Made by a program: the position numbers and the translations under genes. A model generated the notes under the pieces. It did no database searches. It was not told the DNA's origin and saw nothing but the letters and a program-made list of their open reading frames with translations. DNA of 64,000 bases from Malacoraja senta. Lineage: Eukaryota. The stretch lies in assembly GCA_038087875.1 (NCBI GenBank), contig JAXLNO010005840.1, positions 1-64,000 of the forward strand, in the 5' to 3' direction. Shown one piece after another: positions 3,115-64,000 of this stretch (positions within the stretch are counted from its first letter, which is position 1; each line of letters begins with the position of its first letter).

Positions 3115-3375
3115 TTGCTGTTTTGTTCTGCCTCCGCATTCATTCATCGACTTGCCCTTTGATGATTCCATGAAAACCAGTTTCAGAGACCGTATTTGTT
3201 ACCCAGTAATTCCTGTCAAATGCAGCCGCCATCCATTTCTGTCTTGGAACTGTAATTACCATGTTTTTGTCATAATACTGTATCTCACAACCGTCCAGTA
3301 CACCCACGACACTATATTCTGGTAGATGAGTACTCCCGTGGTTCAGGGTGTAGTAATAGATCAGTGTGTGAGGCC
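3115..3375 (-). pseudogene. MHC class I-like locus B, alpha1 exon with premature stop
   Basis: Acceptor ttttctttgtgtctag|GG, then PHTLIYYYTLNHGSTHLPEYSVVGVLDGCEIQYYDKNMVITVPRQKWMAAAFDRNYWVTNTVSETGFHGIIKGQVDE*MRRQNKTA. Y7, Y59/W60, R84 and the N86-K-T glycan site are present. TGA at 3140-3142; the donor is weak. Confidence 0.92.
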
Positions 3376-3744
3376 CTAGACACAAAGAAAATAATACAAT
3401 TATTGTCAAGTAATAGAAATTTCTATGGATAGGAAAGGTTTGGAGGGAAATCGGCAAAACACCAATTGGATTTACATTGCACTAAACATGATATCCTTTA
3501 ACCTGTATCTATAGATTGTGAACGGCTTCATTGTAATGTAGTCTTTTCACTGACTGGATAGCACACAAGAAACATTTTCACAGTAAAACAGTACACGTGA
3601 TATTAATAATAAATTAAACTAAGCTAAAATATAGATAGGTGGGTCAAGGGTAGATGGGGCATCTTGGCTGGCATAGATAAGCTGGGCTGAAGGGCCTGTT
3701 TCTATGCTGTACACGATTCTAAATGTCAAGCTTACTTAGATTAT

Positions 3745-4037
3745 TTTAGTTTAGTTTAGAGATACAGTGTGGAAACAGGCCCTTCAGCACGAGTCGGCAC
3801 AGATCCCCGCACATTAACACTATCCTACACACGAAGGACAATTTACATTTATATCAAGCCTATTAACCTACAAACCTGTACGTCTTTGGAGTGTGGGAGG
3901 AAACCGAAGATCTTGGCGAAAACCCACTGGTCATGGGGAGAATGTACAAACTCCGTACAGACAGCACCCATAGTCAGGATCGGACCCGGGGCTCTGATAC
4001 TTTAAGGCAGCAACTCTATCGCTGCCCCACCGTGCCG
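3745..4037 (-). mobile_element. HE1-like SINE
   Basis: Reverse complement of the same consensus with a (ctaaa)n tail. Confidence 0.85.
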
Positions 4038-4889
4038 TGACTGAAGTCTGAAGAAGGGTTTCGGCCCAAAACTTTGCCTATTTCCTTCGCTCCATAGATG
4101 CTGCTGCACCCGCTGAGTTTCTCCAGTATTTTTGTGTACCTTCGATTTTCCAGCATCTGCAGTTTCTTCTTAAACACTGTTCCAATGCTATATCTCTATA
4201 TCATTTTGAGCTGCAATATACAGTAAGTTGTCCAAATCGGATTGCATCATGCCAGTACATCAAGAGCAAACTCTAAAAATATCAATGTAACATTTAACTT
4301 CTACTTTGATATGACCTCCTGGTGACTTGTTCACTACATCCCCCTTTGTCAGGGAGTTCCCCAATCATCTCACTGGAGAGGCCCCACATTCACACTTACT
4401 CAAATACCACATATTTCCTGCTAGACTAGTTTTTCAACTGTTTACTCTCACAGTCTGCCCTGTGAACATGCAGAAATTAACATCACAAAACATCAGGATT
4501 GAACAACTCATTATCAACCTTAGACACAGAGTGCTAAAGTATCTCAGCGAGACCGGCAGCATCTCTGGAGAAAAAGGCTGGATGACACTTTGGGTCGGGA
4601 CCCTACTTCAGTCTCAAGCAGGATTAGTCTGAAGAAGGGTCCCAACCCGATACATCAGTCTGAAGAAGGATCCCAACCTGAAGCTTCACCCAGCATCACC
4701 CATCCTTTTTCTACAGAGATGCTGTAGAACACCTCTGACCCGTTGAGTTACTCCAGCACTTTGTGGCTCTCTTTGGTACAAACCAGCATCTGCAATTCCT
4801 TGTTTCTACATCATTATCTATCTCTTTGAGAAAGCGTTCCCATAGAATTTGCATCCTAACAAAATAAGATCATACAAAGTTACCAATAA

Positions 4890-5212
4890 GGGCGGCACAG
4901 TGGCACAGTGGTAGAGTTGCTGCCTTACAGTGTTTGCAGTGCCAGAGACCCGTTTTCAATCCTGACTATGGGTGCTGTCTGTACGGAGTTAGTACGTTCT
5001 CCCCGTGACCTGCGTGGATTTTCGCTGAGATCTTCGATTTCTTCCCACACTCCAAAGACGTGCAGGAATGTAGGTTAATTGGCTTGATGCATGTGTCAAA
5101 TTGTCCCTCGTGTGCATAGGATAGTATTAGTGTGCGGGTTAGTCGCTGGTCGGTGCAGACTTGGTGGGCTGAAAGGCCTGTTTCCGCGCTGTGTATCTAA
5201 ATTAAAAAACTA
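4890..5212 (+). mobile_element. HE1-like tRNA-derived SINE
   Basis: ggcggcacagtggcacagtggtagagttgctgcc head, central ttctccccgtgacctgcgtgg, CR1-like 3' end with a ctaaa tail. Confidence 0.85.
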
Positions 5213-5669
5213 AAGAACCTATTTTACATATCTCACTTCCTTTGGTTCACGCAGTGTTCTCTCTGGTGTAGACTGATTGAGCCATTTTCAGTGCTTATTC
5301 TGGCTAATAGAGATAGCAACATGAAAACCACAGAAAGAATCTTAAAATAAACTGAATCCTGCAGCATATAAACAGGCCCATTTGCCCAATCTTGTCTATG
5401 CTGACCGAGATGCTTATCTACAATTACATGAATTACGCCCTTATCCCTCCCTGACTTTCCTACCAAAAGTCCAAATGCTTTATAGACATTGTGATTATAT
5501 CTGCCTCTACCATCTCCCCTGCAGCTCATTCCAGATAACTACTGCGGTGAGAAACGTCTGCTCAGATCCCCTTGACATTTCTCTCCCATCACCTTAAACC
5601 TCCAGTTCTAGTCTCCACTGCCCTGGGAAAGAGACAGTTACTCTCTATCCTATCTATACCCCAACGATA

Positions 5670-6110
5670 GACACAAAATGCTGGAGTAACTCAGCAGGGC
5701 AGGCAGTATTTATGGAGAGAAGGAATGGATGATGTTTAGAAACGTCACTCATTCCTTCCCTCCAAAGATGCTGCCTGTCCTGCTGAGTTCCTCCAGCATT
5801 TTATGTCTGTCTTCGGTGTAAACCAACATCTGTTAATCCTTCCTGAAGAAGGATGTCGACCCGAAATGTCACCCATTCCTTCTCTCCAGTGATGCTGCCT
5901 GTCCCACTGAGTTACTCCAGCATTTTACATCTGTCTTCAGTATAAACCAGCATCTGTAGATCCTTCCTGAAGAAGGGTTTCGACCCGAAAAGGTCTCGAC
6001 CCGAAATATCACCCATTCCTTCTCTCCAATGATGCTGCATGTCCCACTGAGTTACTCCAGCTTTTTGTGTCTTTCTTCAGTTTAAACCAGCATCTGCAGT
6101 TCCTTCCGAC
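5670..6110. repeat. Array of Penelope terminal repeats (one inverted, about three tandem, period 124 bp)
   Basis: Recurring unit CTGAAGAAGG..GACCCGAAA..TCACCCATTCCTTCTCTCCA..GATGCTGCCTGTCCCACTGAGTTACTCCAGC; CTGA at 5843 and 5967. The same repeat recurs at more than 20 other sites in the window. Confidence 0.85.
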
Positions 6111-19251: not shown

Positions 19252-20822
19252 AAATTAACCTTTTTGGGAGTCCTTCACCAACACTCCCATGACACTGTGT
19301 GCTTCCGATTTCTGGATTCTCTCTCCATTTGTAAAATAATCTACACCTTTATTCTTTTTTTTTAATTTATTTTTTATTTTTTTTATTTTAATTTTATTAG
19401 AAGTACAATTGTATACAATCATATTTTCATAATACCTTTTATGTACAGCTTCTTATTTAAAAAAATTTTTGAAATAAAGAAGAAAAAGAAAAAAAGTTAG
19501 ATAATGAAAAATAGAAAAATGTGAGATATATAGTGTGTGAAAAAGAAAAATAAAGAATGAAGAAAGAAAGTTGAGACATAGAAAATAGAAGAAAGAGAAT
19601 AAAAGAAGAGGAGAAGAAAAGAAAATAGAAGGAGATCATTTATAATCTTGACCATCCGCAGTCACGGATTAGCTTTTACACCTGTTTTGCACCATACGTT
19701 TCCAAAAAGACGACAAATGGAGACTAACTCGTTATGAATTGGTCAAATTTATCTATTAGGAGGAATCGCATTTCCTCAAGATGTGCGGTATCCAACATAC
19801 TTGCAATCCACATTTTGAGCGTTGGTATTGGTGTATTTTCCCAAAATTTCAATATTAATTTTTTTGCTATTATTAAACCATAATTAAAAATTGACTTTTG
19901 AGATGAGCTCAATTTGTTCCCGTCTTCCATTACCCCAAATATAATCAATTCATTATTGGGTTCCATTTTTGTCTTAAATAGTTTTGTAAATATTTTGAAA
20001 ATATCACTCCAAAATCCATGAAGTTTTATACAAGAAACAAAAGAGTGTGTTATAGTTGCGTCTTGGGTTAAACATTTATCGCAAATGGGCGATATATTTG
20101 GATAAAATTTATTTAATCTTGTTTTTGAGTAATATAATCTATGTAAAATTTTAAATTGGATTAGATTATGTCTAGCGTTAATCGAACACTTGTGAATGTA
20201 TGTCAAATACTTTTCCCATGTAGCCTTCGTAATTTTTATCAATAATTCCCGTTCCCACTCTTCTCTAATTACCTCGGTCACAGGTAAATCTATATTTAAG
20301 ATACTATTATATAAATATGATATTAATTTTTGTGTATCAGCTTTTATATTCATTACTTCTTCTAGTAAATCAGGAGTTATTTTTTGATATCCCTGTATGT
20401 ATGTCTTCAAAAAATTACAAATCTGAAAATATTTAAAATAATGAGTGTTTTTCAGTTTAAATTTTAATTGTAATTGTTGAAATGATAATAAATCTCCCAT
20501 TTCATACATGTCCCCAATCCTTTTAATTCCTAAACTTTCCCATTGATTATATATTTTATCCATCATAGATGGTTTAAATAAAGGATTATTCGCTATCGGT
20601 GTTAACAATGATAGGTTTCTTAATTTTAAGGATAATTTTATTTGTTTCCATATTCTTATTGTATCTTGTATAATTGGGTTTTTCTTATATATTGTATTGT
20701 TCATTTTTTTCAGGGAGAAGAAAATTAACCTTTTTGGGAGTCCTTCACCAACACTCCCATGTCACTGTGTGCCTCCGATTTCTGGATTCTCTCTCCATTT
20801 GTAAAATAATCTACACCTTTAT

Positions 20823-20824
<2 letters not shown>
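19252..20824. repeat. 103-bp direct repeat (19252-19354 and 20722-20824) flanking the truncated L1
   Basis: aaattaacctttttgggag...ctacacctttattc occurs twice with 2 mismatches; the sequence is CR1-derived. Confidence 0.95.
19355..20721 (-). mobile_element. 5'-truncated L1 of a second subfamily
   Basis: 326-aa ORF homologous to, but clearly diverged from, the C-terminus of the neighbouring ORF2; a different 3' UTR; an A-rich tail at 19355. Confidence 0.93.
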
Positions 20825-20862
<38 letters not shown>

Positions 20863-21250
20863 TTATTTATTAGAAGTACATTACATCACAGCCACATACA
20901 TTAATACTCGTCATTTATATCTTCTTACAATTAATGTACTCCCTTTATTTATTTTTTACACTAAAGAAAGAAAAGATTGAAAGAGAGAAGAAAGTGAAGG
21001 AAAAAGTGCAAGTGTAGAAAAGTGTAGAAAATGTAACAACAAAAAAGGACGAAGACCCTATGAGAGCGAAATTAAAAACAAAAAGAAAAAGAGTTAAGAA
21101 ATAGGCCCTAAGAAAAGAAAAGAGAAAGAGAAAAAAAGAAAAACAAATGTTTTTTTTTGAGCATCACGTAAATAGGACATACCAACTCTTCAACTATCAT
21201 CCCCCCTTACCCGACCTCAATTTTTTATTTTTTTAAAGTACTTTTGCACC

Positions 21251-24200
21251 CTATGTTTGTAATAATTCTATAAATGCAGACCACGTCAGGTGGAAGTGAT
21301 CTGGTTTACCTGCTAGGAGGAGTCTTATCTCTTCAAGGTGTAGTGTTTCAAACATATTTGAAATCCACATATTTATAGTTGGTATTGGAGCCTTCTTCCA
21401 AAATTTTAGAATTAGCTTTTTTCCAGTTATTAACCCATAATCCATTAATTTCTTTTGAAACACATTTAGTTCTGGATCATCTTCCGTTATTCCGAAGATA
21501 ATCCATTCTGCTTTGGGTATCAGTCTTGTTTTAAATAACTTTGTAAAGATTTCAAAAATTTCATTCCAAAATTTTTGAATTTTTGTACAGAAGACAAATG
21601 AGTGCGCTATAGTTGCTTCTTGGGATTGACATTTATCACAAATAGATGATACGTTTGGGAAAATTTTATGAATTTTAGTTTTCGAATAATATAATCTATG
21701 TAAAATTTTAAATTGTATTAAAGTGTGTCTTACATTAATCGAGCATTTATGTACTTTTAATAAGTATTCATTCCAACTTTCCTTTGAAATTTTAATAGCT
21801 AACTCTTGTTCCCAGTCTCTTCTGATACCCTCCGTAGATGGTATTTGTACATTTAAGATAATATTGTACAAATATGATATTAAGTTTGCTGATTCCGCTT
21901 TTATCTGCATTGCCTCGTCCAGTACATCTGCTGGGTTATTATGATGATCTTTTATATATTTTTTCAAATAGTCGCATATTTGAAAGTATTTAAAATATTG
22001 ATTATTTCCGAGTTTATATTTTATTTGTAATTGTTGAAATGAAAGTAATTTTCCAGTTTCATACAAGTCACCAAGCGTTTTAATTCCTAGTCTATCCCAT
22101 TGTGTATAAGCTTTATCTATAATAGAAGGACTAAACGAAGGGTTATTGACTATAGGTAATAAAAGTGATAAGTTTCTTAATTTTAAATTTTGTTTTATTT
22201 GTTTCCAAATACGGATTGTACTATGAATAATTGGGTTCTTATTATAGTTTATGTTATTCAATTTCATTGGAGAGAGGAGGATCGCTCCAATGTTTCTAGA
22301 GGAGCAATCCTCTTTCTCCATTACAATCCAGTCTACTTGCTGGGCGGAGTTATCCATCAGTTGAATCATGTTTTTAATATTTACTGACCAATAATAATAC
22401 ATAAAATTGGGTAGTGCTAGACCCCCCAATACTTTAGATTTATTCAGATGGGTTTTTTGTATTCTATGTGATTTATAGTCCCATATAAAATTAGTGATAT
22501 CTGAGTCGAGTTTTTTAAAAAACTTCTTAGGTAAGTATATAGGAATTGATTGAAATAGGTATAAAATTTGTGGTAAAAAGATCATTTTTATTGCGTTTAT
22601 TCGGCCTATTAAAGACATCGGAAGCGTTTTCCAGAATTTAATTAATGTATTCAGTTTATTAAGTAGGGGGTCAAAATTTGCCCTGAGCATACCTTGATAT
22701 GCTCTGGTAATTTCGATTCCCAAATATTTAAATTTTTCTGTAGCTATTTTAAAAGGGAATTTTAAAAGATGTGTTGAATCTTTCGGTTTTATTGACATAA
22801 TTTCACTTTTATTCCAATTTATTCTATATCCAGAAAAAGATCCGAAGTCTTCAATTAAATTTAATATATTTGGTATAGTGATTTGAGGTTTTGTAATATA
22901 CAATAATATATCATCCGCGTATAAAGATATTTTATTATATGAGTCTTTAGTATTATATCCATGAATATCAGGGTGTATTCTAATTTTTTCTGCTAGCGGT
23001 TCAATAATGAGAGCAAACAGCTGTGGTGATAATGAGCATCCTTGTCTATTTCCCCTTGATAGTTGAAATTTCGAGGATAATATGTTATTAGTAAGTATTC
23101 TAGCTGTAGGTTTGTTATATAGTAACTTAATCCATAAAATAAAATTCTCTCCCAGTTGAAATTTTTGTAATACTTTATCCATATAATTCCATTCTACTTG
23201 ATCAAATGCTTTTTCAGCATCCAGCGAAATAATTGATAATTCTTGATCTTCAGATTTGTGTGAGTGCATTATGTTGAGTAGACGTCTCATATTATTAGAA
23301 GAGTATCTCTTAGGGATAAACCCTGTCTGATCTGGGTTTATTAATTTACTAATGTATTTACTTAATCTTCTGGCTAATGTTTTCGCTAATATTTTTTGAT
23401 CTGTGTTTAACAATGCTATAGCTCTATATGAGCCAGGTTCTTCTAAATCCTTATTTTTCTTAGGTATTAATGTAATCGTTGATTCCGCTAATGTATCAGG
23501 TAGTATTCGTTTTTTAAAAGCGTATTGGTACATTTTTTGTAATCTTGGTATTATTTTATCATAAAAGTTTTTATAAAATTCATTAGTAAATCCATCAGGG
23601 CCTGGTGTTTTTCCATTTTTTAGTGAGTTTATTGTATCTTCTAATTCCTTAATTGAGATTTGTGCACCCAGTTCCTCTTGTTCCTTCAGCTCTAACTTTG
23701 GAAGATTACAGGTATCCAAGAACTTTGTGATATTATTGGAATCAATTATCGTTTTAGATGTATACAAATTCTCGTAAAATTGCGCAAACCTTTTATTAAT
23801 ATCCTTCGGTGTTGTTAATAATTCCCCTTTATCTGATTTGATCTTTGGTATAGTATGTTCCTTTTCTCGTTTTTTTAGCTGGCGAGCCAAAAGTTTATGC
23901 GGTTTATCCCCAAATTCAAAGTGCTCTTGTTTTGTAATTTGAAAAAGTCTTATAAGTTTGGCAGATAATAATTTATTTAATTTAAATTTTAAAATTATTA
24001 TTTTATTATGTTTATCTATTGATGGATCTTTAGCATTATCTATATCCATTTGTCTAATAAGTTCTTCTAACTGTCTTTGTTCATTCTTATTCTTTTTATT
24101 TTGAAAAGCTTGATATGAAATTATAATACCCCTAATGTATGCTTTAAAAGATTCCCAAAGTAAAGTAGGCGATATATCTGAAGTATCATTTGTTTGAAAA

Positions 24201-25042
24201 AAGACCTCCATTTGTTCTTTTAAATATATACTCGCTTGTGGATCTTTTAAAATTTGAGAGTTAAATCTCCAGAATGAATTATTCTCAGACAATCCTTCCA
24301 GTTTTAAAAAGAAAGTTAGTGGAGAATGGTCTGAAATTGAATTTGTATGATATATTGCATTAGATGTTTGGGGGATTAATTTTGTATCCAGCAGAAAGTA
24401 GTCTATACGTGAGTATGTCTTATGTACCATTGAGTAAAACGAATATTCCCTGCCAGTTGGATTCACAATTCTCCAAACATCTGCTATATTAGTGTTGTTT
24501 ATGTAGGTATTGAGGAGTTCCCCAGTTTTCGATTTCATATTCCCTCTCTGTTTTTGACTTGATTTATCTAAGTACGGGTCTAAAACACAGTTAAAGTCTC
24601 CGCCTATTATAACATTTTGATAGTTTGACTCTGCAATTATATTGAAGACTTTATTGAAAAAGTGGGGGTTATCAAAGTTAGGGGCATATATATTTACCAA
24701 AGTAAGTGGAGTGTCATGGATTTCTCCATTAACTATTAGGTATCTCCCTTCTATATCTGTTATAATATTCTTTGCTTTAAATGGTATACCTTTTCTTATG
24801 ATAATTGACGTGCCTCTAGATTTTGAAGTGAATGAAGAGTGGTATGTTTGACCTATCCATTTCGCCCTCAGCCTAACTTGGTCCTGAGGTTTTAGGTGTG
24901 TTTCTTGTAGGAAGGTAATGTCAGAATTATACATTTTTAGCTGAGCTAATATCTTACCCCTTTTGATAGGTTCATTAATACCTCTTATATTCCAACTACA
25001 AAATGAGACTCCTCCTAGGTTCTTTTGTGTGGTGTCATGCAT
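21251..25042 (-). CDS. L1 ORF2p (AP endonuclease + reverse transcriptase + C-terminal Cys domain)
   Basis: 1263-aa open frame with SWNIRG, FLQETH, GGDFN, SRIDYF, SDHSP, LDAEKAFD, RQGCSLSP, YADD and CDKC. Confidence 0.97.
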   Translation of the reverse strand: MHDTTQKNLGGVSFCSWNIRGINEPIKRGKILAQLKMYNSDITFLQETHLKPQDQVRLRAKWIGQTYHSSFTSKSRGTSIIIRKGIPFKAKNIITDIEGRYLIVNGEIHDTPLTLVNIYAPNFDNPHFFNKVFNIIAESNYQNVIIGGDFNCVLDPYLDKSSQKQRGNMKSKTGELLNTYINNTNIADVWRIVNPTGREYSFYSMVHKTYSRIDYFLLDTKLIPQTSNAIYHTNSISDHSPLTFFLKLEGLSENNSFWRFNSQILKDPQASIYLKEQMEVFFQTNDTSDISPTLLWESFKAYIRGIIISYQAFQNKKNKNEQRQLEELIRQMDIDNAKDPSIDKHNKIIILKFKLNKLLSAKLIRLFQITKQEHFEFGDKPHKLLARQLKKREKEHTIPKIKSDKGELLTTPKDINKRFAQFYENLYTSKTIIDSNNITKFLDTCNLPKLELKEQEELGAQISIKELEDTINSLKNGKTPGPDGFTNEFYKNFYDKIIPRLQKMYQYAFKKRILPDTLAESTITLIPKKNKDLEEPGSYRAIALLNTDQKILAKTLARRLSKYISKLINPDQTGFIPKRYSSNNMRRLLNIMHSHKSEDQELSIISLDAEKAFDQVEWNYMDKVLQKFQLGENFILWIKLLYNKPTARILTNNILSSKFQLSRGNRQGCSLSPQLFALIIEPLAEKIRIHPDIHGYNTKDSYNKISLYADDILLYITKPQITIPNILNLIEDFGSFSGYRINWNKSEIMSIKPKDSTHLLKFPFKIATEKFKYLGIEITRAYQGMLRANFDPLLNKLNTLIKFWKTLPMSLIGRINAIKMIFLPQILYLFQSIPIYLPKKFFKKLDSDITNFIWDYKSHRIQKTHLNKSKVLGGLALPNFMYYYWSVNIKNMIQLMDNSAQQVDWIVMEKEDCSSRNIGAILLSPMKLNNINYNKNPIIHSTIRIWKQIKQNLKLRNLSLLLPIVNNPSFSPSIIDKAYTQWDRLGIKTLGDLYETGKLLSFQQLQIKYKLGNNQYFKYFQICDYLKKYIKDHHNNPADVLDEAMQIKAESANLISYLYNIILNVQIPSTEGIRRDWEQELAIKISKESWNEYLLKVHKCSINVRHTLIQFKILHRLYYSKTKIHKIFPNVSSICDKCQSQEATIAHSFVFCTKIQKFWNEIFEIFTKLFKTRLIPKAEWIIFGITEDDPELNVFQKKLMDYGLITGKKLILKFWKKAPIPTINMWISNMFETLHLEEIRLLLAGKPDHFHLTWSAFIELLQT

Positions 25043-25847
25043 TTTGAATAATTATAGTACCTTTGAATCTTGTGGTGCGTCCATATCCCAGGTCTTTAGG
25101 TATTGGGGGAGTTTTTGAATTATTAACTTTTGTTGGTATGTCCATATTATTCTTATCACTAAACACAAAACACAAACAAGTGATTTTATGTAATAAAAAA
25201 AAAACTAAAAAAGTGAGGCTACAGTGTCTATAGTCGGCACTGTAGCAAGTGACCCACCTGTAGGTGGGAAAAAACCTTATTTTGACTTCCATTGCGTTGT
25301 TGCTCAACTCGCTCCGCTCTCTTAGTTAATCATAACATATTAAAATATTAAAACGAGGCCTCACATTCATATATATAATACAATTTTACCCTGATATTTC
25401 CTTATAACATATATATATATCAGAGTTTAATTATTAAACCAATATTTTTGATTTCAATAAGAATCAGCTGTTGGTTGAAGGGGTTAACGAGACGTGCTCC
25501 TGGACATAAGCCAGGAGCTCGTTTCTCATCCCCTCCTCCCGCTTATAGACAAGGTTACAATTTATTAAAAATTCATATTAGTATGTTAGTTCATTATTTT
25601 TTTGGTTTTTTTGTTAGTATTCTAATCTAACCTGCATAACTTTTAAAGTTGTTAATAGGATAAGTTCTTACAATTGGTTATAGCATTTTAATCAATAAGC
25701 AATTATTTTCTAATTCATATCCCGTTATAAAGTTGTTTACACGTTTTGAACAGAAAATGTCCTTGCTTCAACATTCCGGAGATAACAATGTAACTATCCC
25801 CAGACAAAACATAGCTGAGAATTATTCGGATCTGCCAAAGCTCCCTT

Positions 25848-26918
25848 TTATTTCTGTCTTTCAACAATCGTTTGGGCATATTTGAAAGCGTCTTCAGGCT
25901 TAACAAATGACTTTTCAAGACCATTAAAAGAAATACGCATTTTAGCGGGATAAAAAACCCCGAATCTGACCCCTTCTCTCCCTCTTAAAAGATCTTTAAC
26001 CTTATCAAATTTGTTTCTTTTTTGCACAATTTCATGTGGGTAGTCCCTGAATATCTTAATAGTGTCTTTGTCCAGCCGTAATTGTACACCATATTTGATT
26101 TTTGTCATAACATATTCCAGTTCTGCAGTGTCTCGAAATTTCACTATAATATGTCGTGGATAAGCTTTTCCCGCATCAAATCTTTTTCCAAATCTTGGGA
26201 CACGATGAGCCACTTCGATTTTCGGTTCCTTGGGAAGATTCAACAGTTGTTTCAACAAGCCCATGGCAAATTCACGTACCTGTTCCCCTTCTGCCCCCTC
26301 TGAAACACCAAGAATCCTCAGATTCTGGCGTCTAGAACGAGCTTCCAGGTCCAGGCATTTGAATGAGACTTTCTCTAATTGAGTCCCCATTTGTAGTGAT
26401 GCTTGTTCGTTTTCTCGCCTCATTTGCTCATGTTCTTGCCTCAATTTCGCCATGTCTTCGACCAGTCGTGCCGTATTTTTCTCCAATTCCGTAATTGTCT
26501 GCATACTTGCAGCTACTGTTTCAAGTACAGCCGTGAACTTATCCGTAGTAATTACATCCATCTTATCCATTTTCTCTGATAGTCCATCTTTCACCTCATC
26601 AATTCGTTTATTCATAGTGTCCAGTAAATCCGTCATATTCTTCTGGTTACCAGCATTTAAATCCTTCATCATCTTCTGCATTCCTTCCATCATTTTTGCC
26701 GAATTTTCCTTCATTTCCTTCTTATCTTCCACCCTATTATCCGAGATCTCATCTTTCAAATTTTTCATTGATTTTTTCAAGTCATCAAAGTCTTTCTTAG
26801 ATCTTGTATCCATTTCTGCAGCCACTTCAGAGACTTCAGAGGTAACTTCAGTTTCGAACTGTTTCGACAGTTTATTCACAGCTCTCTGAGGGCTCACAGC
26901 TGGAGTCAATTTACTCAT
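25848..26918 (-). CDS. L1 ORF1p (coiled coil + RRM + CTD)
   Basis: 356-aa open frame with a heptad-rich N half and the L1 ORF1 motifs DLEARSRRQNLRILGVSEG, IEVAHRV and PRHIIVKF. Confidence 0.95.
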   Translation of the reverse strand: MSKLTPAVSPQRAVNKLSKQFETEVTSEVSEVAAEMDTRSKKDFDDLKKSMKNLKDEISDNRVEDKKEMKENSAKMMEGMQKMMKDLNAGNQKNMTDLLDTMNKRIDEVKDGLSEKMDKMDVITTDKFTAVLETVAASMQTITELEKNTARLVEDMAKLRQEHEQMRRENEQASLQMGTQLEKVSFKCLDLEARSRRQNLRILGVSEGAEGEQVREFAMGLLKQLLNLPKEPKIEVAHRVPRFGKRFDAGKAYPRHIIVKFRDTAELEYVMTKIKYGVQLRLDKDTIKIFRDYPHEIVQKRNKFDKVKDLLRGREGVRFGVFYPAKMRISFNGLEKSFVKPEDAFKYAQTIVERQK

Positions 26919-27469
26919 TTAAAGGGCTTCAAACCACCGTTTAAAACATCGCGTTTAACGATGACGTCATCAGCGCGGTAACCAGAAGCTCCGGTAAGGT
27001 TTTTAAAAACAATCCCGATTTTCGGACCCGTTTTACACGATAAATCGTGAAGTTTTTCGGGAGAGGAGCTGGGTGCACGTCTGTTAGTCTAACATGACGC
27101 CACCGTCTTATTACCAAATACATGTCTCCACACTTTGCTATACTGAATTTCATCTGCCACTTCTCTGCCCACTCTCCTAACCCGAACAAGTCCTTCTGCA
27201 AAGTCCTTGCATCCTCTACACTGCCTGCCCCTCCACCTATTTTAGCATCATCTGCAAACTTGGCCACAAAACATTCAATCCCCTTATCCAAATCATTAAT
27301 AAACCACGTAAACATGACGACCGCACGTTTGGAGCTAAGAGTTGTCACTCAATCAATAACAAAATCCACAGTGTGTGCTAATCGTTTATTGATTTCGCAT
27401 TGTACTAGTGCCTCACTCTCTTCCCACATTTGGCCATAAACATGAACCTGTCAAACAATGCACTTTGTG

Positions 27470-28782: not shown

Positions 28783-28825
28783 GCAATCAGAATCAAAATA
28801 CCACGGGTCGTCACCAGTTGTCGAG
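28783..28825 (-). promoter_or_regulatory. MHC-type X1X2-Y promoter module upstream of the locus B leader
   Basis: Minus strand CTCGACAACTGGTGACG (X1-like plus CRE half-site TGACG, 28825-28809), an 18-nt spacer, then CTGATTGC (Y-box-like, 28790-28783), about 75 nt upstream of the leader ATG. Confidence 0.65.
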
Positions 28826-31800
28826 CGATGTCATTGAACCAGCAGGAAACAATTGACTGTAATGGAGACACGAGGAGGTGCTGATGCTGATTTACAACAA
28901 CAAAAGACACAAAGTGCTGGTGTAACTCAACAGGTCAGGTGGCAACTCCGGAGGGCATAGATAGGTGACGATAGACACAAAGCGCTGGAGTAACTCAACG
29001 GGTCGAGCAGCATCTTTGGAGAAAAAGGATAGGTGACTATTGTCAGTCTGAAGTAGGGTCCCAATCTGAAACAGCGCCTGTCAATGTCCTCCAGAGATGT
29101 TGTCCGACCTGCTGAGTTACTCCAGCACTTTGGTTTTATCACACTCTATAGCAAATGGAATGGAAAGGCAGGGCGTAGTTGCCTGGAACTGTAATTACGT
29201 TTCAGATAACTCCATTCTTATGCTGCTAACTGCTCCTTATGTTATGATTCAGGAGACCCATAAATCCAATGCCTATCCTGACTTGAATCATTACAATGCA
29301 GAACAAAAAGGAGGAAACCAAACACTGTACACAGCAGGTAGAGCTGCTGCCTCACAGCACCAGAGACCAGCGTTAGATCCTGACCTCTGGTATTGTCTGT
29401 GTAGATTTTCTTTAAGAAAGAACTGCAGATGCTGGAAAAATCGAAGGTAGACAAAAATGCTGGAGAAACTCAGCGGGTGAGGCAGCATCTATGGAGCAAA
29501 GGAATAGGCGACGTTTCTGGTCGAAACCCTCCAAGAAGGGTCTTGACCCAAAACTATTCCTTCGCTCCATAGATGCTGCCTCACCCCCTGGGTTTCTCCA
29601 GCATTTTTGTCTAGCTACTGTATAGATTTTGTTCCTTCTTCCTGTGACCACCTGGGTTCTTCCCGGGTGCTCTGGTTTTCTCCCACATTCCACAGGTGTG
29701 TGGGTTTGTCAGTTAATTGACATCTGTAAATTTCCCCTAGTGTGTGTGGGGATTGGACAAAAAAGTGGGATAACATTGAACTAGTATGAAGGGGTGACCG
29801 GTGGTCAGCATGGTGGGCTGAAGGGCCTGTTTCCATGTTGTATCTTTCAACTCAAAATGGAATTCTGTAAAACAGTTATATTGGAAACTAGTTTGGACAT
29901 TGAAACTGTGGAGCAAATGGTGGTGGATATAGACGGCGATGGTGTCTACAAATTTATCAAGGATCTATATCCGATATGGGGAGAACTTACACAATAGCAT
30001 TGGTATTGGTTTATTATTGTCACTTGTATTGTGATATAGTGAAAAGCTTTTATTTGCATCCTAATCAAACCAGATCAGGAATGACTGAGGGATTGTATTG
30101 AACAACAGGGCAGGCTTGTGGGCCTGTTTCAATGCAATAAACTCCATATCAATGTACCATATAAAGAATGCAGGTGCTGGTATGGTTGGTGATGAGCCCA
30201 AAATATTGCTTTTGTAATTCAAGATATCCTCAGTGTTGCAACGGTAGAGTTGCTGCCTATAGCAGCAGAGACTCAGGTCGATTCTGACTAACGGTGCTGT
30301 CTGTACGGTGTTTGTACATTCTCCCTGCATCTCCATGCGTGACTGCATTGTTTTTCTCTGGGTGCTCCAGTTTCCTCCCACATCTCAAAGAAGTACAGGT
30401 TTTTAGGTTAATTTGCTTTGGTAAAATTGTAAATTGTCACCTGTCGTGGTATAGTACTATTGTACGGGGAGTTAGCGAGGACTCGGTGGGCCGAAGGGCC
30501 TGCTTCCATGATGTACCTCTGAAGTCTAATGTCAAAATGTTAATTTCTATTCATTTTAAGTTTCAGCTCTTAACCAAAATCATTTCAATCAACCCAAAGA
30601 TGTCTGTGTTTCTCCCTCACTACATCAGATTTAAGTCTGCATTTTTAAAAATGCTTTTAATTTTGCTCGGATAGTGCTGAACTAATTTGCTTATGTTACT
30701 GGAGTTATAACTCACAGCAGTGACCACAGTAAGCAAGAGACATCAAATACATGAACACAAGAAAGGAGAAGCAGGAATAGGCCCACAAGCCACTGGCAGA
30801 ATTAGTCCAAACCAATGTTTTAGTCCATATTACTCAACCACTGATAGAGGCCACATTATTCTGCTCCCTTCTCCCTAAAGTTGAGTTTATTATTGTAATG
30901 TGTACAAAAATACGGTGAAATACCATGTTTTGCATGCTATCCAGTCATAATACACCATACATGAGTGCAATCATAAACAAGTAAGAGTGCAATGATTGTA
31001 GTGGGTAATTGTAGAGATCACAAGAAAAATGAAGTACTTGTTGGCCATGAGTAAAGTCTGTTCTGCAGCTCAATTAGGTCATGACTGATCTACTCATGAC
31101 CAGAAGAGTCTGTAGCCAGTAACCAACAACTTCCCAAAGAAACAAATCCATCCTTCTCAGTAACGTAATGAATCTACACTCTGCAGTTGAAAATTCCCAT
31201 GATTCGTTATCATCTGGGAGAAAAATAAAACAATTTTCTCCTCAGTTTGAAACCTTGGCCTCCAAGGTGTAGTTTCCTCCATGAGGGGAACTATCAAGAA
31301 CAGGAGGAAATAGAACAGTAGTAGGCTATCAGCCCCTGAGAATAGTCACCAAACTTGTCCCACCATTCAATAAAATGATCACTGTTCAGTTGGCCTCAGC
31401 TCCTTAGATTAGTTTGGTTTAGAGGTACAGCCTTGAAACAGGCCCTTAGGCCCACTGAGTCTGTGCTGACCAGTGATCCCCCCACACTAACACTATCCTA
31501 CACACACCTGGGGCAATTAACCTGCAAACCTGCATGTCTTTGGAGTGTGGGAGGAAGCTGGAAGCCCCAGAGAAAACCCACACAGGTCACAGGGAGAACG
31601 TAAAAAATCCATACATACAGCACCCATGGTCAAGATCAAACCTGGGTCTCTGCCACTGTAGCAACTCTACCGCTGCTACTCCGTGCCACCCCTTTGCGTC
31701 ACCATGCTGCCTACACAGTTCTATCCTATACACATAGGACAATTTACAGATGCCAATTAACCTATAAACCTGCAGGTCTTTGGAACTGGGAGGAAACGAA

Positions 31801-49505: not shown

Positions 49506-49506
49506 G
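49479..49506. repeat. (GT)n microsatellite
   Basis: Pure GT run. Confidence 0.9.
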
Positions 49507-53869: not shown

Positions 53870-54344
53870 AGAACAGTACAGCACAAGAACAGGCCCTTTG
53901 ACCCACAATGTTTGTGCCGAACATGATGCCAAGACCAATTGTTATCTGCTTGCACATAATCCATATCCATCCATTCCCTGCATATACATGTGCCTATCTA
54001 AAAGTCTCTTAAATGCCACTATCATATCTGCTTCCACCACCACCTCCAGCAGCACATTCCAGTCACTCGCCACCCTTGGCGTAAAACACTTGTCCTGCAC
54101 ATCTTTTTTTAACTTTGCCACTCATTGTAAAGCAATACCTGCTCTTATTTGATATTTCCTTCCTGGGTAAAAAGTCTGATGGTCTACCCTATCTCTACTC
54201 CTCCCAGTTTGATATATTACTGTCAGGTCTCCCCTCAATCCCCGACATTCCAGAGAAAACAATCCAACTGTCCAGTCTGTCCAACTTCTCCCTGTGGCTA
54301 ATACCCCACTAATCCAGGCATCATTCCGGTAGACCTCCTCTGCA
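53870..54344 (-). mobile_element. CR1 LINE 3' fragment abutting the MHC cytoplasmic coding sequence
   Basis: Minus strand tgcagaggaggtctaccggaatgatgcctggatt (QRRxTxMMPG-like) through to a CR1-type 3' end. Confidence 0.8.
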
Positions 54345-54541
54345 TCCCAAAGGAAGCTGATTGTGCTTCATGGTCCTCTCCTGGTCTCTGCTGTTGTCAG
54401 CTGGTACCTGTTCATTGAAAGGTTTTCTCTTTTTCCTCTTCTTCCAGCAACCAATTCCAAGGATGATCCCCAGGAGAATGAGAGGAACAATTACAGCTCC
54501 AGTCACGATCCTAATCTTCATATCTTCTTTCACTGCCCTCT
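54345..54541 (-). pseudogene. MHC class I-like locus A, transmembrane/cytoplasmic exon
   Basis: Phase-1 acceptor ccaacag|AG joins alpha3 in frame to give ERAVKEDMK-IRIVTGAVIVPLILLGIILGIGCW-KKRKKRKPFNEQVPADNSRDQERTMKHNQLPL: a hydrophobic span followed by a basic stop-transfer. The 3' boundary is uncertain (possible donor CAG|gtacca, or run-on into CR1). Confidence 0.8.
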
Positions 54542-54858
54542 CTGTTGGCATATACAGTGGCTTGCAAAAGTATTCATACCCCTTGAACTTTTCCACATTT
54601 TGTCACGTTACAACCACAAGCGTAAATGTATTTTATTGGGATTTTATGTGATAGACCAACATAAAGTGGCACATAATTGTGAAGTGGAAGGAAAATTATA
54701 CATGGTTTTCAAATTTTTTTACAAATAAAAAACTGAAAAGTGTCGCGTGCGAAAATATTCAGCCCCCTTTACTCTGATACCCCTAAATAAAATCCAGTGC
54801 AACCAATTGCCTTCAGAAGTCACCTTATTAGTAAATAGAGTCCACTTGTGTGTAATCT

Positions 54859-55202
54859 CGGGACGACAGATGGCGCAATGGGCTAAGTGTTCGGCTGGCA
54901 ACCGGAAGGTAGCCGGTTCGAATCCCGCTTGGAGTGCATACTGTCGTTGTGTCCTTGGGCAAGACACTTCACCCACCTTTGCCTGCGTGTGAATGTGTGT
55001 GAGTGATTGGTGGTGGTCGGAGGGGCCGTAGGTGCAGATTAGCAGCCACGCTTCCGTCAGTCTGCCCCAGGGCAGCTGTGGCTACAGAAGTAGCTCACCA
55101 CCACCGAGTGTGACTGAGGAGTGAATGAATAATGCGATGTAAAGCGCCGAGTATTAGAAAGGCGCTATATAAATCCCATCCATTATTATTATTATTATTA
55201 TT
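54859..55202 (+). mobile_element. tRNA-derived CORE/AFC-like SINE with an L2-type tail, nested in the Tc1
   Basis: Pol III-like head (gatggcgcaatgg ... ggttcgaatccc), CORE-like gtccttgggcaagacact, ctgccccagggcagctgtggctac, and tail tgtaaagcgcc...gcgctatataaat-(ATT)n. TSD TAATCT at 54853-54858 and 55202-55207. Confidence 0.85.
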
Positions 55203-55282
55203 AATCTAATCTCAGTATAAATACAGCTGTTCTGTGAAGGCCTCAGAGGTTTGTTAGAGAACATTAGTGAACAAACAACATC

Positions 55283-56292
55283 ATGAAGCCAAAGGAACAC
55301 ACCAGACAGGTCAGGGATAAAGTTGTGGAGAAGTTTAAAACAGGGTTAGGTTATAAATAAATATCCCAAGCTTTGAACATCTCACGGAGCACTGTTCAAT
55401 CCATCATCCGAAAATGGAAAGAGTATGGCACAACTGCAAACCTACCAAGACATGGCCGTCCACCTAAACTGACAGGCCGGGCAAGGAGAGCATTGATCAG
55501 AGAAGCAGCCAAGAGGCCCATGGTAACTCTGCAGGAGCTGCAGAGATCCACAGCTCAGGTGGGAGAATCTGTCCACAGGAAAACTATTAGTCGTGCACTC
55601 CACAAATCGGGCCTTTATGGAAGAGTGGCAAGAAGAAAGCCATTGTTGAAAAAAGCCCATAAGAAGTCCCGTTTGCAGTTTCCCACAAGCCATGTGGGGG
55701 ACACAGCAAACATGTGGAGGAAGGTGCTCTGGTCAGATGAGACCAAAATTGAAGTTTTTGGCCTAAATGCAAAACGCTATGTGTGGCGGAAACCTAACAC
55801 TGCACATCACCCTGAACACACCATCCCCACTGGGAAACATGGTGGTGGCAGCATTATGCTGTGGGGATGCTTTTCTTCAGCAGGGACAGGGAAGCTGGTC
55901 AGAGTTGATGGGGGAAGATGGATGGAGCCAAATACAGGGCAATCTTGGAAGAAAACCTGTTAGAGTCTGCAAAAGACTTGAGACCGGGGCGGAAGTTCAT
56001 CTTCCAGCAGGACAACGACCCTAGAGCTACAATGGAATGGTTTAGATCAAAGCGTATTCATGTGTTAGAATGGCCCAGTCAAAGTCCAGACCTAAATCCA
56101 ATTGAGAATCTCTGGCAAGACTTGAAAATTGCTGTTCACAGATGCTCTCCATCCAATCTGACTGAGCTTGAGCTATTTTGCAAAGAAGAATGGGCAAAAA
56201 TTTCAGTCTCTAGATGTGCAAAGCTGGTAGAGATATACCCCAAAAGACTTGCAGCTGTAATTGCAGCGAAAGGTGGTTCTACAAAGTATTGA
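55283..56292 (+). pseudogene. Tc1 DD34E transposase, disrupted
   Basis: MKPKEHTRQVRDKVVEKF..., TAA at 55358-55360, GRPPKL, WSDETKIE, a frameshift near 55910, FQQDNDP with the following KHTA segment deleted, SPDLNPIENLW, and AKGGSTKY at the end. Confidence 0.93.
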
Positions 56293-57659
56293 CTCAGGGG
56301 GGCTGAATACTTTTGCACGCGACACTTTTCAGTTTTTTATTTGTAACAAAATTTGAAAACCATGTATCATTTTCCTTCCACTTCACAATTATGCACCACT
56401 TTGTGTTGGTCTATCACATAAAATCCCAATAAAATACATTTACGTTTGTGGTTGTAACGTGACAAAATGTGGAAAAGTTCAAGGGGTATGAAAACTTTTG
56501 CAAGCCACTGTGTAGTGCATTTTAAACATTTAGTGATCAATAACAACATTGTAATGATTTTATTATCTAAATTAAAGTAGCACTGTTCATATCTAATTAA
56601 AAAGTAATAACGTTTTAGATTTAAGTATTTATACAGAGGATGGATGTGCTTAAAATGATCAATGAAAAATCATTAAGTTCATATTAGCATTGAGGTATTG
56701 AGATTTTATCTGCAGCATTTAATTAAGAATTTAAAGAATCAAGTACGTCAGAAATATATGACTATTTACAGTGTAGAGGTCAACAAGGCCATTTTCTTAT
56801 GTTGATGATTGTTATTATAGCAAATAAAAGTGAACCCATTTATAGTTGATAAAACTTCAAAGGTTTTAATCTTTGCTGATATTTCAATGATATCTGAGTT
56901 TAATTTTCTCACATACACATGCTCTCTCTTTCTCTCTCTCTCCCCCTCACTGTCTCACACACATGAGCCCACACACACATACACACATAGGCACACACAG
57001 ACATTAACACTACTGTCTATTTGTACTGACCAGCAATCTTAACCATGTCAGCTTGGCCCTGGTGTGAAGATCTTTGCAGAGGTCTTGTCTGGAACAAATA
57101 AGTCAGCTACAGAACAGGTGCTGCTACTTCAGCCTGATAATATGGCACCACTATTGGTCTTTTGTGTAACTAGCTACTATCAGAAAATTAGCTAGATGCC
57201 CAAGGAAGAAGATAAGAGACCTTGTCCAGGATCAGCCTATCTTGCTTCCACTGTTCCTACATTTGGATGGGTGAGTTAAGGGTGACATAAGAATAATTTT
57301 GACCATAAGATATTGGAGCGGAATTATGCCTTTCAAGTCCATTGAGTCTACTCCACCATTCAGTCATAGCAGATCTATTTTTTACCGCTAAATCCCATTC
57401 TCTAGCCTTCTCCCTGTAACCTTTGTCACCCGTACTCATCAAGAACCTATCAATCTCTGCTTGAAAAATATGCAATGACTTGACCCACACAGCTGTTTGT
57501 ATCAATGAATTCCACAGATTCACCACCCTGTGACTAAAGAGATTCCTCCTCATCTCCATATTGAAGGTAGGTATTTTTATTGTGAGGCTGTGCTAGACTC
57601 TCCCATTACTGAAAACTTCCTTTCCCATCAACTAACCAGGCATTTCATTATCTGGTAGG

Positions 57660-59450: not shown

Positions 59451-59482
<32 letters not shown>

Positions 59483-61174
59483 CATAGTATATATACCCAC
59501 ACGCACACACACACAATTTCCCTCCTGGGATTAATAAAGTTCTATCGTATAGTATCGTGTGTGTAGGAAGGAACTGCAGATGCTGGTTTAAACTGAAGAT
59601 AGACACACAAAGCTGGAGTAACTCAACAGGTCAGACAGAATCTCTGGACAAAAGGGAAATATTACGTTTAGGGTTGGTTCTGAAATAGGTTCCTGCACAC
59701 CTTTGGAATGTGGAAGGAAACAAGAGCACCCGAAGAAAACCCATGCGATCAAAGTGAAAAGGAGCAAACTCCAAACAGACAACACCCATATTCAGGATCA
59801 ATTCCAGGTCTCTGGCACTTTTAGGCAGCAACCTTATGGCCAATGTACAGCCCCATTGTCTTGAACTTAATTAAAACGCCAAGTGTAGCATTTCCTGCAG
59901 TTGCAATGGAAAGTGCCAGGAGAGGGGGTGGTTTGGGTGGGAAGGGACAAATTGACCAGGGAGTTATGGAGGGAGCGGTCTCTATGGAAAGCCAACAGGG
60001 GAGGAGATGGGAAGATGTGGCCAGTTGTGGGATCCCATTGGTAGACAAAAAAGCTGTAGAAAATCAGCGGGTGAGGCAGCACCTGTGGAGCGAAGGAATA
60101 GACGATGTTTCGGGTCGAGACCCTTCTTCAGATTGATGTGGGGGGGGGGGAATGACATGAAAAATAAAGGAAGAGACGGAGACAGTAGGCTGTGGGAGAG
60201 CTGGGAATGGGAGGGGAAGGAGGGAGAAACAAGGACTACCTGAAATTAGAGAAGCCTATGTGCATAGCGCTGGGGTGTAAACTACCCAAGCAAATATGAG
60301 GTGCTGCCCCTCCAATATGCGGTGGGCCTCACTCTGGCCATGGAGGAGGCCCAGGACAGAAAGGTCAGATTCGGAATGGGAGGGGGAGTTGAAGTGCTGA
60401 GCCACCGGGAGATCAGGTTGGTTATTGCGAACTGAGTGGAGGTGTTGTGCGAAGCAATCGCCAAGCCTGCACTTGGTCTCACCGAGGTTGATCATACGCT
60501 GAATAATCCAACCACATTTTTTTTTGGAAGTGGAAAGAAATAATAGAAATTGCATTCATTGCAACGTGTAAAAAGAGTTAAGATACAGTATTATAATTGT
60601 GCTGCATGTCATTGTGGTATATATCATGTCCTGATTGGTGAATATGTTTAGTTTGTGGCTTTATTTGAAGCAGAAATAATATGTGAATGCTTCATTGAGC
60701 ATAATTCTGACTGGTCGTCCGAGCACATTATCGCACGTGTCATGCAAGCCATCTTAAATAACCACCTAAACTGTCATTTGGCAACTTAAAAAGCTACCAA
60801 GGTTGCCCGGCTGACAACAGAGAAAAAAAATTAAGTGAGAGCCCTGCAAGGTGTATAATATTTTTGACACTGTCATAGGCCTTTCTTACATATGCTGTCA
60901 CAACGCACTGTAGTCTCTAAACAACACTTCAGTAATTTTCCTTGCCCTCCATTTCAGAATAATAGTGTTTTAAGCCAATAACTCGACACTAGCAGTGGCA
61001 ATAAATAAATAAATAAAGCCCAGCTTTCCAGCCCCTTATCTCATTGGCCACGCTCGGCTGCAAATCGGTGTCAATCTGGTGGACCATCTTCCTCTGGTCG
61101 TGGGGGTGGGGGATTGGGGGGGGGCCTCACAAGTGGAACAGCTTAGGGCCTCTCTTCATCTAAATCCGGCCCTG
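57660..61174. mobile_element. Non-autonomous hAT DNA transposon (3.5 kb)
   Basis: 14-bp TIR CAGGGCCGGATTTA...TAAATCCGGCCCTG and a perfect 8-bp TSD CTGGTAGG (57652-57659, 61175-61182). It splits a CR1 fragment. No transposase ORF was recognised. Confidence 0.92.
59560..60490 (-). mobile_element. Penelope-like element fragment nested in the hAT
   Basis: GETKCRLGDCFAQHL, LPVAQHFNSPSHSESDLSVLGLL. Confidence 0.85.
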
Positions 61175-62368
61175 CTGGTAGGTTTCAATGAGATTCCCAC
61201 CTCATCCTTCTAAATCCCATGAGCACAGGCACAGAGACTTCAAACACTCCTCATACGTTAAATCAATCATCCCCAGGACATACATCCTCTCGACCCTCTC
61301 CAAAGCCAGCACATCCTTTCTAATATGGAGCCCAAAACTGCTCACAATATTCCAAATGTGTCTTCACCAGTGCCCGATAAATCCTCAGCATTATATTATT
61401 GTTTTTATATTCTACGCCCCCCGAAATGAATGCTGGCATTGCATTTGCCTTACTTACCACTGACTCAATCTGCAAATGAACTATTTGGGAATCCTGCACT
61501 AGTACTCCCACTTTGTAGCTCAGGTTTCTCAATTCTCTCCCCATTTAGAAAATAGTCTATGTCTTTATTCCGACTGCCAAAATGTAAAACCAGACACTTG
61601 CTACACTGTATTCCATTTGGCTCTGCTTTGCCCACTCGGTGGAACTGCTGCCTTACAGCGCCAGAGACCCGGTTCAATTCTGACTACGGGTCCCGTCTGT
61701 ACAGAGTTTTGTACCTTCTCCCCGGGACTTGCGTGGGTTTTGCCTGGATCTCCGGTTTCCTCACTCAGTCCAAAGACATACAGGTTTGTAGGTTAATTGG
61801 CTTGGTATAATTGTAAATTGTCCCCTAATTAGTAAGATAATGTAAGTGTGCAGGGATCGCTGGTTGACGCAGACTCGGTGGGCTGAAGGGCCGGTTTCTG
61901 CGCTGTATCTCTTAAACTAAAACCACATTCCATTGACTATCAATAATTATGAGCAATTAGATAACCACAAATTAATAATGGGTGGCACAGTGGCGTAGCG
62001 GTAGAGCTGCTGCCTTACTGCACCAGAGACCTGGGTTTGATCCTGACTACAGGTGCTGTCTGCAAGGACATTGTATGTTCTCCCTGTGACTGCGTGGGTT
62101 TCCTCCCACACTACAAAGACATACAGGTTTGTAGGTTACTTGGCTTAGGTAAAATTGTAAATTGTCCGTACTGTGTAGGTTAGTGTAAATGTATGGGTTG
62201 ATCACTATTCAGCGAGGACTCAGTGAGCTGAGGGGCCTGTATCTGCAGCATATCTCTAAAGCCTAAAGTCTAAATCCACAGCTTAGTTAAGAGTGTGAGT
62301 TGAGACTGTTATCTCAGTCCAGGAGATTTATGGTCTCAAGTGATCAGCCTCATTGACTTGCCACTTAC

Positions 62369-62641
62369 CCTGTGGAACATTGACTCCCTGCAGCAGAGTT
62401 GCATGTTCGATGTAACAGGAGAATTTTGCCACATCTTCTCTATTCAGTTGAATTGTATTCTTCAGCTGGTAAGTCCCATCCCAATTGGGCAACAGATCAC
62501 TGGATTCAGACTCATGGACCCCCTCACCATCTCTCAGCCACGTTACATCGATGGCCCGTGGCTAGAAGCCTGTGACAAGGCAGGAGAGTCTCAGTGATTG
62601 CGACCCATCACGTTTAATCCCAATAAACACCTCAGGGGTTT
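62369..62641 (-). pseudogene. MHC class I-like locus A, alpha3 (Ig C1) exon with nonsense codon
   Basis: Acceptor cttgcag|AA, then TPEVFIGIKRDGSQSLRLSCLVTGF*PRAIDVTWLRDGEGVHESESSDLLPNWDGTYQLKNTIQLNREDVAKFSCYIEHATLLQGVNVPQ, then G|gtaagt. 273 nt, phase 1/1. TAG at 62562-62564 replaces the Tyr of GFYP. Confidence 0.95.
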
Positions 62642-63456
62642 CTGCAAGTGTAAGAAGAGTCAGAATCAGTGAAGACATGAACAAAAGCCTTCAATTGTAA
62701 GATCACTGCAACTCACCACTTTCCCAATCAGAGTTTTTTCTCTGGCTGAACTAAGTTTTCAGTCTAGACCCAAAATGCTGGAATAACTCAGCAGGTCAGG
62801 CAGCATTCTGGAGAGAAGGAATGCCCAGAGATGCTATCTGACCCACTGAGTTACACCAACATCTTCTATCTTCAGTGTAAACCATCATCTGCAGTTCTAT
62901 CTTGCACAAAGTTTACAGCCTTTTCTCTTTTCATTTTGCATTTCTGGCAAAACAACAAAACATTTAGCTTTAATATCACTGACATGCTCCTTATCTTAGC
63001 TCCAGGCTTTAACTGACAGCACAGATGAAAGGGGAATGCAGGCCCAATGGAGGAGTATAACTCACCATTGGGATTGATACTGTAGACATGATTGCTTCTA
63101 CCTGTTCATGAATCTCTGCTGAATAATAACACTAAATATTCCAAGAGGGAATGGGAGGAAGAAGTTCTTCAAATAGAGAACTGTTGGAAATTGAATGTCA
63201 CCATCCCAAGGAGTAATAGAGGCAAATAGAGAATCTGATTGGGTTTCTGATCAGTTCAGCAACAGACCCTTCAGGCCACAAGGTCGGTGCTAAACATAAG
63301 ACCAAGATACATATTCCTCCATTTCCTGAATATCTATATGACTGTGGATAAAGGACACTGGTACAATATTTATCTTTCACTTGCACTTCCTACCCACTGG
63401 TTCCATCTAAGAGGCACGTTGCCAGACAATTTACTGATACCCACGTTGTAGAACAG

Positions 63457-63746
63457 GGTGGCGAAGCGATCGAGCTACTGCCTTACAGCGCCAGAGACCT
63501 GGGTTTGTTACTAACTACGGGTGCTTGTCTTTACAGAGTTTGTACGTTCTCCCTGTGACCTGCGTGGGTTTTATCCGAGATCTTCGGTTTCCCCTCACAC
63601 TCGAAAGACGTACAAATTTGTAGTTTAATTGGATTGGTATAAATGCAAATTGTCCCTAGTGTGTGTAGGATAGTGTTAGTGTGCGGGCATGGCTGCTCGG
63701 TGCGGTCTCGGTGGGTTTCCGCGCTGTATCACTAAACTAAACTAAA
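63457..63746 (+). mobile_element. HE1-like SINE in the alpha2-alpha3 intron of locus A
   Basis: Same consensus with a ctaaactaaactaaa tail. Confidence 0.85.
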
Positions 63747-63845
63747 TAATTACTCAAGTGACAGCCTGAAGTGCATGATATTTCCCACCTGATCTATCCA
63801 GAGGATATCCTCTGGCCCATCAGTCAGAGTGCCTACGTCGTGTAC

Positions 63846-64000
63846 CTCTCCTCTGTAGTGCTTCTTGTCCACACTCCAGATATATCCGCAGCCACTTCAC
63901 ACAGTCCTTCTCCAGGAGATCTTTAAAATACTTGTTATGAAGGTGTTGACATTCCACCGATCTGCTAGCATCTGGAAATCTGGACGTAGTGCAATCCAGC
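63846..64000 (-). pseudogene. MHC class I-like locus A, 3' part of alpha2 exon (runs off the window end), frameshifted
   Basis: Minus strand reads WIALRPDFQMLADRWNVNT / (1-nt shift at 63940-63941) / HNKYFKDLLEKDCVKWLRIYLECGQEALQRR, then G|gtacac, a phase-1 donor. This is the alpha2 helix pattern with W147, C164, W167 and Y171. Confidence 0.92.

Follow-up and report, generated by a model that had tools for sequence, protein, structure and literature searches.

The window, that is, the whole stretch of 64,000 nucleotides (nt) of Malacoraja senta DNA that was analysed, carries five exons on the minus strand that belong to two neighbouring genes resembling those for the heavy chains of class I molecules of the major histocompatibility complex (MHC). 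The two genes are referred to here as locus A and locus B. Translation and inspection of the splice sites of the window place all exon junctions in phase 1. The five exons are the following (the slash marks the exon boundary):

64000..63846, minus strand: 3′ part of A-alpha2; donor G/gtacac; the exon continues past the window end.
62641..62369, minus strand: A-alpha3, a C1-set immunoglobulin (Ig) domain; 273 nt; acceptor ttgcag/AA, donor G/gtaagt; phase 1 at both ends.
54541..54321, minus strand: exon for the connecting peptide, transmembrane (TM) segment and cytoplasmic tail of A; acceptor caacag/AG; stop codon at 54321-54323; frame open.
28708 (ATG) to 28657, minus strand: coding part of the B leader, MILFILLSFFRVQGAQAG; consensus donor CAG/gtaagt.
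3375..3115, minus strand: B-alpha1; 261 nt; acceptor tctag/GG, donor A/gttatt; phase 1 at both ends.

The acceptors and donors of all five exons are identical to those in three other skates. The exon boundaries are those of the skate gene models and follow the class I layout of one exon per domain with phase-1 introns. The C-terminus of the little skate protein P0006 (XP_055486430.1) matches the A-TM/tail exon. An original prediction, made from the letters of the window without database searches, had named these five minus-strand exons with their coordinates and phase-1 junctions, and the translation, the splice sites and the skate gene models bear it out. The little skate model P0006 itself uses an alpha2 donor 33 nt beyond the conserved G/gtacac (L001:12983-13021; window 63813-63845). 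This extension adds 11 residues (TRPRHSDWWNG) which are most likely intron, and a stop interrupts the corresponding part of the window.

The B leader lies 25 kb upstream of B-alpha1. It is considered genuine because 16 of its 18 residues are the same as in the N-terminus of little skate P0001, MILFILLSFFHVQGALAG. An in-frame ATG further upstream (28729-28727), which is followed by TGA, was considered as a lesion of the B leader and rejected, as Rhinoraja has TAA at this place. Since Rhinoraja has a stop after the first ATG and its protein begins at the second, the second ATG is regarded as the true start of B. Beyond the five exons, tblastn searches with six relatives found no further class I exons in the window. 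In the little skate B-type gene, alpha2 and alpha3 are located 26 kb and 36 kb beyond alpha1, so that the remaining exons of B must fall outside the window. The presence of only the B leader and alpha1 could also be read to mean that B-alpha1 is an orphan exon fragment and not part of a multi-exon locus. However, the little skate distances make the absence of further exons from the remaining 3 kb of the window expected, and in two other skates complete genes run colinear with leader, intron and flanks. We consider the orphan fragment highly improbable.

The class I identity of the exons is evident from profile, structure and protein matches. The Pfam MHC_I profile matches B-alpha1 (E 1e-4) and the end of A-alpha2 (E 3e-3, profile positions 156-179), scores which for single exons lie below the whole-protein cut-off. 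The C1-set profile matches A-alpha3 above the cut-off (E 7e-9), and the cysteine motifs LSCLV and FSCYIEH are present in this exon. In the comparison with solved structures, 9ch4_A is the best match of both B-alpha1 (E 2e-33) and A-alpha3 (E 7.5e-15). Among 1.84 billion representative proteins the best match of B-alpha1 is little skate P0001 (XP_055521884.1; E 4e-39, 87% identity). With little skate P0006 as tblastn query, A-alpha3 is found with E 3e-47 at 87%, and the alpha2, alpha3 and TM parts of this protein are about 88% identical to locus A. All five exons are real and belong to two non-classical MHC class I-like genes that lie next to each other. The assignment to class I-like genes of a cartilaginous fish, already made in the original prediction, is right; the fish is a skate.

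The lineages to which the loci belong were determined with a careful maximum-likelihood tree of 53 rows, from which two long-branch rows, a CD1b of a mammal and the fragment P0177 of little skate, were left out. The tree contains an A clade of 13 rows and a B clade of 17 rows, each with support of 100/100, and the two clades are sisters (97/91). Within both of them the batoids separate from the sharks. The window's A sequence is sister to little skate P0006 (100/100). The window's B sequence stands among the skates, between Rhinoraja and the group of thorny skate and little skate, in a clade that includes the 9ch4 orthologues. Neither locus is placed within the large group of shark sequences labelled ‘F10 alpha chain-like’, and neither groups with the classical (UAA) sequences. 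For the A type, each of twelve shark and ray species has one clear orthologue with 54-72% identity, the next best match having at most 36%; orthologues of the B type are likewise present across sharks and rays. Thorny skate P0154, a B-type protein, aligns with 9ch4 over the whole ectodomain (E 9e-118), the A-type protein P0006 matches 9ch4 with E 3e-60, and the nurse shark classical structure 6lup matches both proteins with E near 1e-40. On these comparisons, locus B is placed in the lineage of 9ch4 and locus A in its sister lineage, for which no published name was found. Since each clade is supported by 100/100 and spans sharks and rays, loci A and B are not tandem duplicates of each other.

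Chain A of 9ch4 is recorded as ‘Ig-like domain-containing protein’ and is a shark class I-like heavy chain. Locus B shares its lineage, whereas locus A has it as the nearest solved structure of a sister lineage. With the classical UAA of nurse shark (6lup) the loci share the fold and the layout of one exon per domain, and Tyr7, Tyr59 and Arg84 (standard class I numbering) are kept in B-alpha1 as in classical class I. UAA is nevertheless far more distant than 9ch4 (about 1e-40 against 1e-118) and forms a separate clade in the tree. A further likeness is to UFA and UGA, MHC-linked non-classical elasmobranch genes common to sharks and rays; that the present loci belong to them is suggested by this likeness and not by comparison with named sequences. 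A review that cites a personal communication (PMC12562908) describes UFA and UGA of sharks and rays as CD1-like class I genes whose products bind lipids and which occur in single or low copy number; UFA is also mentioned elsewhere (PMC10751288). No published description of 9ch4 was found, and the name UFA/UGA for its lineage and its ligand are unconfirmed. Among the proteins retrieved there was no skate relative of PDB 8gm8.

The arrangement of the two genes is shared with other species. A little skate scaffold of 127 kb (JAMYXN010000384.1) encodes P0006, annotated as ‘MHC class I-related gene protein-like, partial’, and P0157 (XP_055486429.1), annotated as ‘class I histocompatibility antigen, F10 alpha chain-like’, on one strand with the A type first. 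Order, strand and exon boundaries of this pair are those of the window. Introns and spacers included, the window is colinear at 88-91% both with this scaffold and with the chromosome on which thorny skate has P0154, and it is about 85% identical to Rhinoraja. The sawfish has the A type at 13.956-13.978 Mb and the B type at 14.020-14.057 Mb of a single chromosome, again on one strand with A first and about 42 kb apart. In Heptranchias, an A-type and a B-type protein are each recorded from a 530-kb contig. The A-then-B neighbour pair is old and conserved from skates to sawfish. The little skate synteny and the leader match thus agree with the two tandem loci on one strand that were originally proposed, with the B leader 25 kb from its alpha1. 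A reading of the two loci as a duplicated pair fails, because they represent two old sister lineages, which little skate and sawfish likewise have side by side and in this order.

Each locus carries a stop codon in the assembly, as had been predicted. In A-alpha3, the codon at 62562-62564 is TAG in the window and TAC in little skate, where it encodes the Tyr of the GFYP motif. Near the end of B-alpha1, TGA at 3140-3142 replaces a Trp that is encoded by TGG in three skates and is also present in 9ch4. As a third lesion, one base is absent from A-alpha2 between 63936 and 63937 (CAT-AAC against CATGAAC in little skate). All three lesions are one-base differences from the orthologues; the little skate copies have the Tyr, the Trp and the intact frame.

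Two public runs, X1 and X2, which come from one organism, provided the contigs that were aligned to positions 62300-64000 for the read check. Contigs of both runs back the TAG: they cover 62333-62713 with no difference from the assembly and no alternative letter. At the site of the frameshift the contigs carry an extra C (plus strand) after 63936, at 160 of 160 depth in X1 and 3153 of 4098 depth in X2, the latter together with two clipped contigs that have this C as their first or last base. With this base the frame of A-alpha2 is restored and reads ...NTFMNKYFKD..., as in P0006. As every contig at the site carries the missing base, the A-alpha2 frameshift either is an error of the assembly or occurs as a private variant of the copy that was assembled. 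Of the lesions whose confirmation in reads the original prediction had asked for, the TAG was recovered and the frameshift was not. X1 and X2 are not identical to the assembly, as about 1 kb of non-repeat sequence contains three more differences of a single base.

Two further features touch on the state of the genes:

54551..56514, plus strand: Tc1/mariner DNA transposon of about 1.96 kb with TA target duplication.
28806..28857, minus strand: conserved block of about 50 nt, approximately 100-150 nt upstream of the B ATG, kept in four skates (alignment).

The Tc1/mariner element has terminal inverted repeats of 224 nt (54551-54774 and 56291-56514) that are 94% complementary, and its transposase frame is split into two open reading frames (ORFs; 55373-55963 and 55918-56292). 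It lies 13 nt upstream of the A-TM acceptor, at a site that is empty in little skate. The insertion displaces any branch point upstream of this acceptor and may harm splicing. The conserved block upstream of B is a putative promoter element; the CCAAT of three other skates, little skate included, is TCAAT in the window only (28837-28833).

The two loci also differ in the substitutions that they have accumulated. Ratios of non-synonymous to synonymous substitution (dN/dS) were obtained as Nei-Gojobori estimates against orthologous exons. The ratio is 0.78 for A-alpha3 (10 non-synonymous and 4 synonymous changes) and 1.40 for A-TM (15 and 3 changes, respectively), and it is 0.33, 0.33 and 0.15 for B-alpha1 in comparison with three skates. 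These values fit drift of some duration at locus A and a constraint on locus B that was lifted only recently.

We consider it probable that the window represents the junction of two old paired class I-like genes which are both disabled in this copy. Locus A would be disabled by the premature TAG in alpha3, by the Tc1 element wedged in before the TM exon and by near-neutral substitution. Locus B would be disabled by the change of TGG to TGA near the end of alpha1 and by the changed CCAAT box, and its loss would be recent because B otherwise shows purifying selection. Loss of function through the stops, disturbed splicing due to the transposon and a promoter role of the upstream block are inferences here. 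With regard to the features of unprocessed pseudogenes, the introns are kept, the TAG is present in the reads, the frameshift is contradicted and the TGA is seen in the assembly alone.

Several observations weigh against the loss of both genes. The alpha2, alpha3 and TM exons of B and the leader and alpha1 of A fall outside the window. The A-alpha2 frameshift occurs in no aligned contig, so that one lesion of A may be an assembly error. The case for locus B depends on a single TGA seen in the assembly, and no run spans this site in a 91-base word search, in which one of eight words matched, this word being common to many organisms. No RNA run matched either stretch in the word search, and the one RNA run that was aligned matched only repeats. 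The dN/dS values are derived from few changes (14 to 20 per exon). The low dN/dS of B fits a working gene equally well, and if the TGA is an error, B may remain constrained.

These points lead to the alternative that both loci are working genes, whose lesions would be errors of the assembly or else rare null alleles carried by the haplotype that was sequenced. The contradicted frameshift, the purifying selection on B-alpha1 (dN/dS 0.15-0.33), the conservation of all splice sites and the intact orthologues in little skate and thorny skate are in its favour. However, the TAG in A-alpha3 shows no alternative letter in two runs, and locus A has both a transposon 13 nt from a splice acceptor and a dN/dS near 1. 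Base substitutions are, moreover, rare errors in current assemblies. Working genes at both loci are thus considered unlikely, and the disabled pair is retained as the preferred explanation. The copies in the window most likely make no working protein. The failure of one of the three reported lesions in the read check is a warning against pseudogene calls from single-base indels in this assembly.

The window also contains mobile elements, among them a nest of L1 copies inside the first intron of B:

19252..27107, minus strand: L1 retrotransposon nest in the 25-kb first intron of B; absent there in little skate and thorny skate.

The first intron of B measures 18 kb in little skate and 25 kb in the window. 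The absence of the 7.9 kb L1 nest from this site in little and thorny skate accounts for the longer intron. The nest contains a full-length L1 (21251-26918, minus strand) in which both ORF1 (25848-26918, 356 amino acids) and ORF2 (21251-25042, 1263 amino acids) are open; ORF2 has endonuclease, reverse transcriptase and zinc-knuckle domains. Since it is absent at the same place in little and thorny skate, this element is probably young and possibly active. The tail of a second, truncated L1 is located at 19724-20704. The spacer between A and B is mostly transposon debris. Fragments with the GIY-YIG motif of Penelope-like retroelements were found at 34492-35337 (plus strand), 27910-28539 and 59821-60555 (both minus strand), and reverse transcriptase fragments at 102-2524, 42574-42876 and elsewhere.

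Whether the window holds the orthologue or a paralogue of the pair in other skates bears on the birth-and-death mode of evolution that was originally suggested. Little skate and thorny skate are 93-98% alike at the locus, and the window differs by about 10% from each of them. Given this distance, the window would hold an older paralogue or else, in a skate further removed, the orthologue. Diverged copies of the pair are present in little skate on at least three scaffolds (84-91% alike). It is possible, and we put this forward tentatively, that in skates the module of two genes, the 9ch4-type gene and its sister, has multiplied into tens of copies or more, of which most are decaying, and that the window pair is one dead unit of this skate-specific amplification and not the orthologue of the single thorny skate locus. 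The diverged little skate copies, one of them with its own alpha2 stop, would agree with such a process. The depth of non-repeat words at 62300-64000, 140-375 in X1 and about 1000-10000 in X2, is very high, although it has not been calibrated against a single-copy gene. Minor variants make up 19-31% of this depth. Depth and minor variants are suggestive of several near-identical copies, or of samples that were pooled, rather than of a single diploid locus. On the other hand, the 10% distance and the position of the window's B sequence in the tree fit equally well a skate species outside the Amblyraja/Leucoraja group. Birth-and-death evolution is plausible for the two-gene module as a whole; it does not explain the pair itself.

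Two observations concern the annotation of the little skate copies. The third A-type copy (L003:11843-14271, JAMYXN010000412.1) is 84-90% like the others and has its alpha2 cysteine codon changed to TGA (GAC TGA GTG), yet it is annotated as a protein of 263 amino acids (P0177). On a 249-kb scaffold (P0151-P0155, P0254) the annotation fuses the B-type gene with an adjacent GPR139-like receptor gene. The fused isoforms of ‘uncharacterized protein LOC129716032’ are probably artefacts of read-through models.

In both lineages the intact genes encode membrane-bound, class I-like heavy chains. The skate B-type orthologues P0154 and P0156 end in a Tyr-Gln-Asn-Ile tail; the corresponding exon of B falls outside the window. 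Logan contigs of transcript length (1.4-3.5 kb) encode complete B-type proteins of 334 amino acids that belong to a skate cluster at 90% identity. From the length of these contigs, intact B-type copies are probably expressed. The loci were originally described as hidden, which holds for the ORF track of the window only, as their orthologues are annotated genes in related skates. The pair is ordinary, and its lineages are on record as non-classical and probably of the lipid type. By itself it matters little: both of its genes are probably decaying members of lineages that have already been annotated in related skates. The fixed order, in which a gene of the sister lineage is followed by a gene of the 9ch4 type, helps to annotate the region in other elasmobranch genomes. 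If the indications of high copy number hold, a CD1-like system would have expanded and turned over in skates to an unusual degree. Such an expansion of an antigen-presenting system by birth and death in a cartilaginous fish would be unlike the single- or low-copy state described for these lineages.

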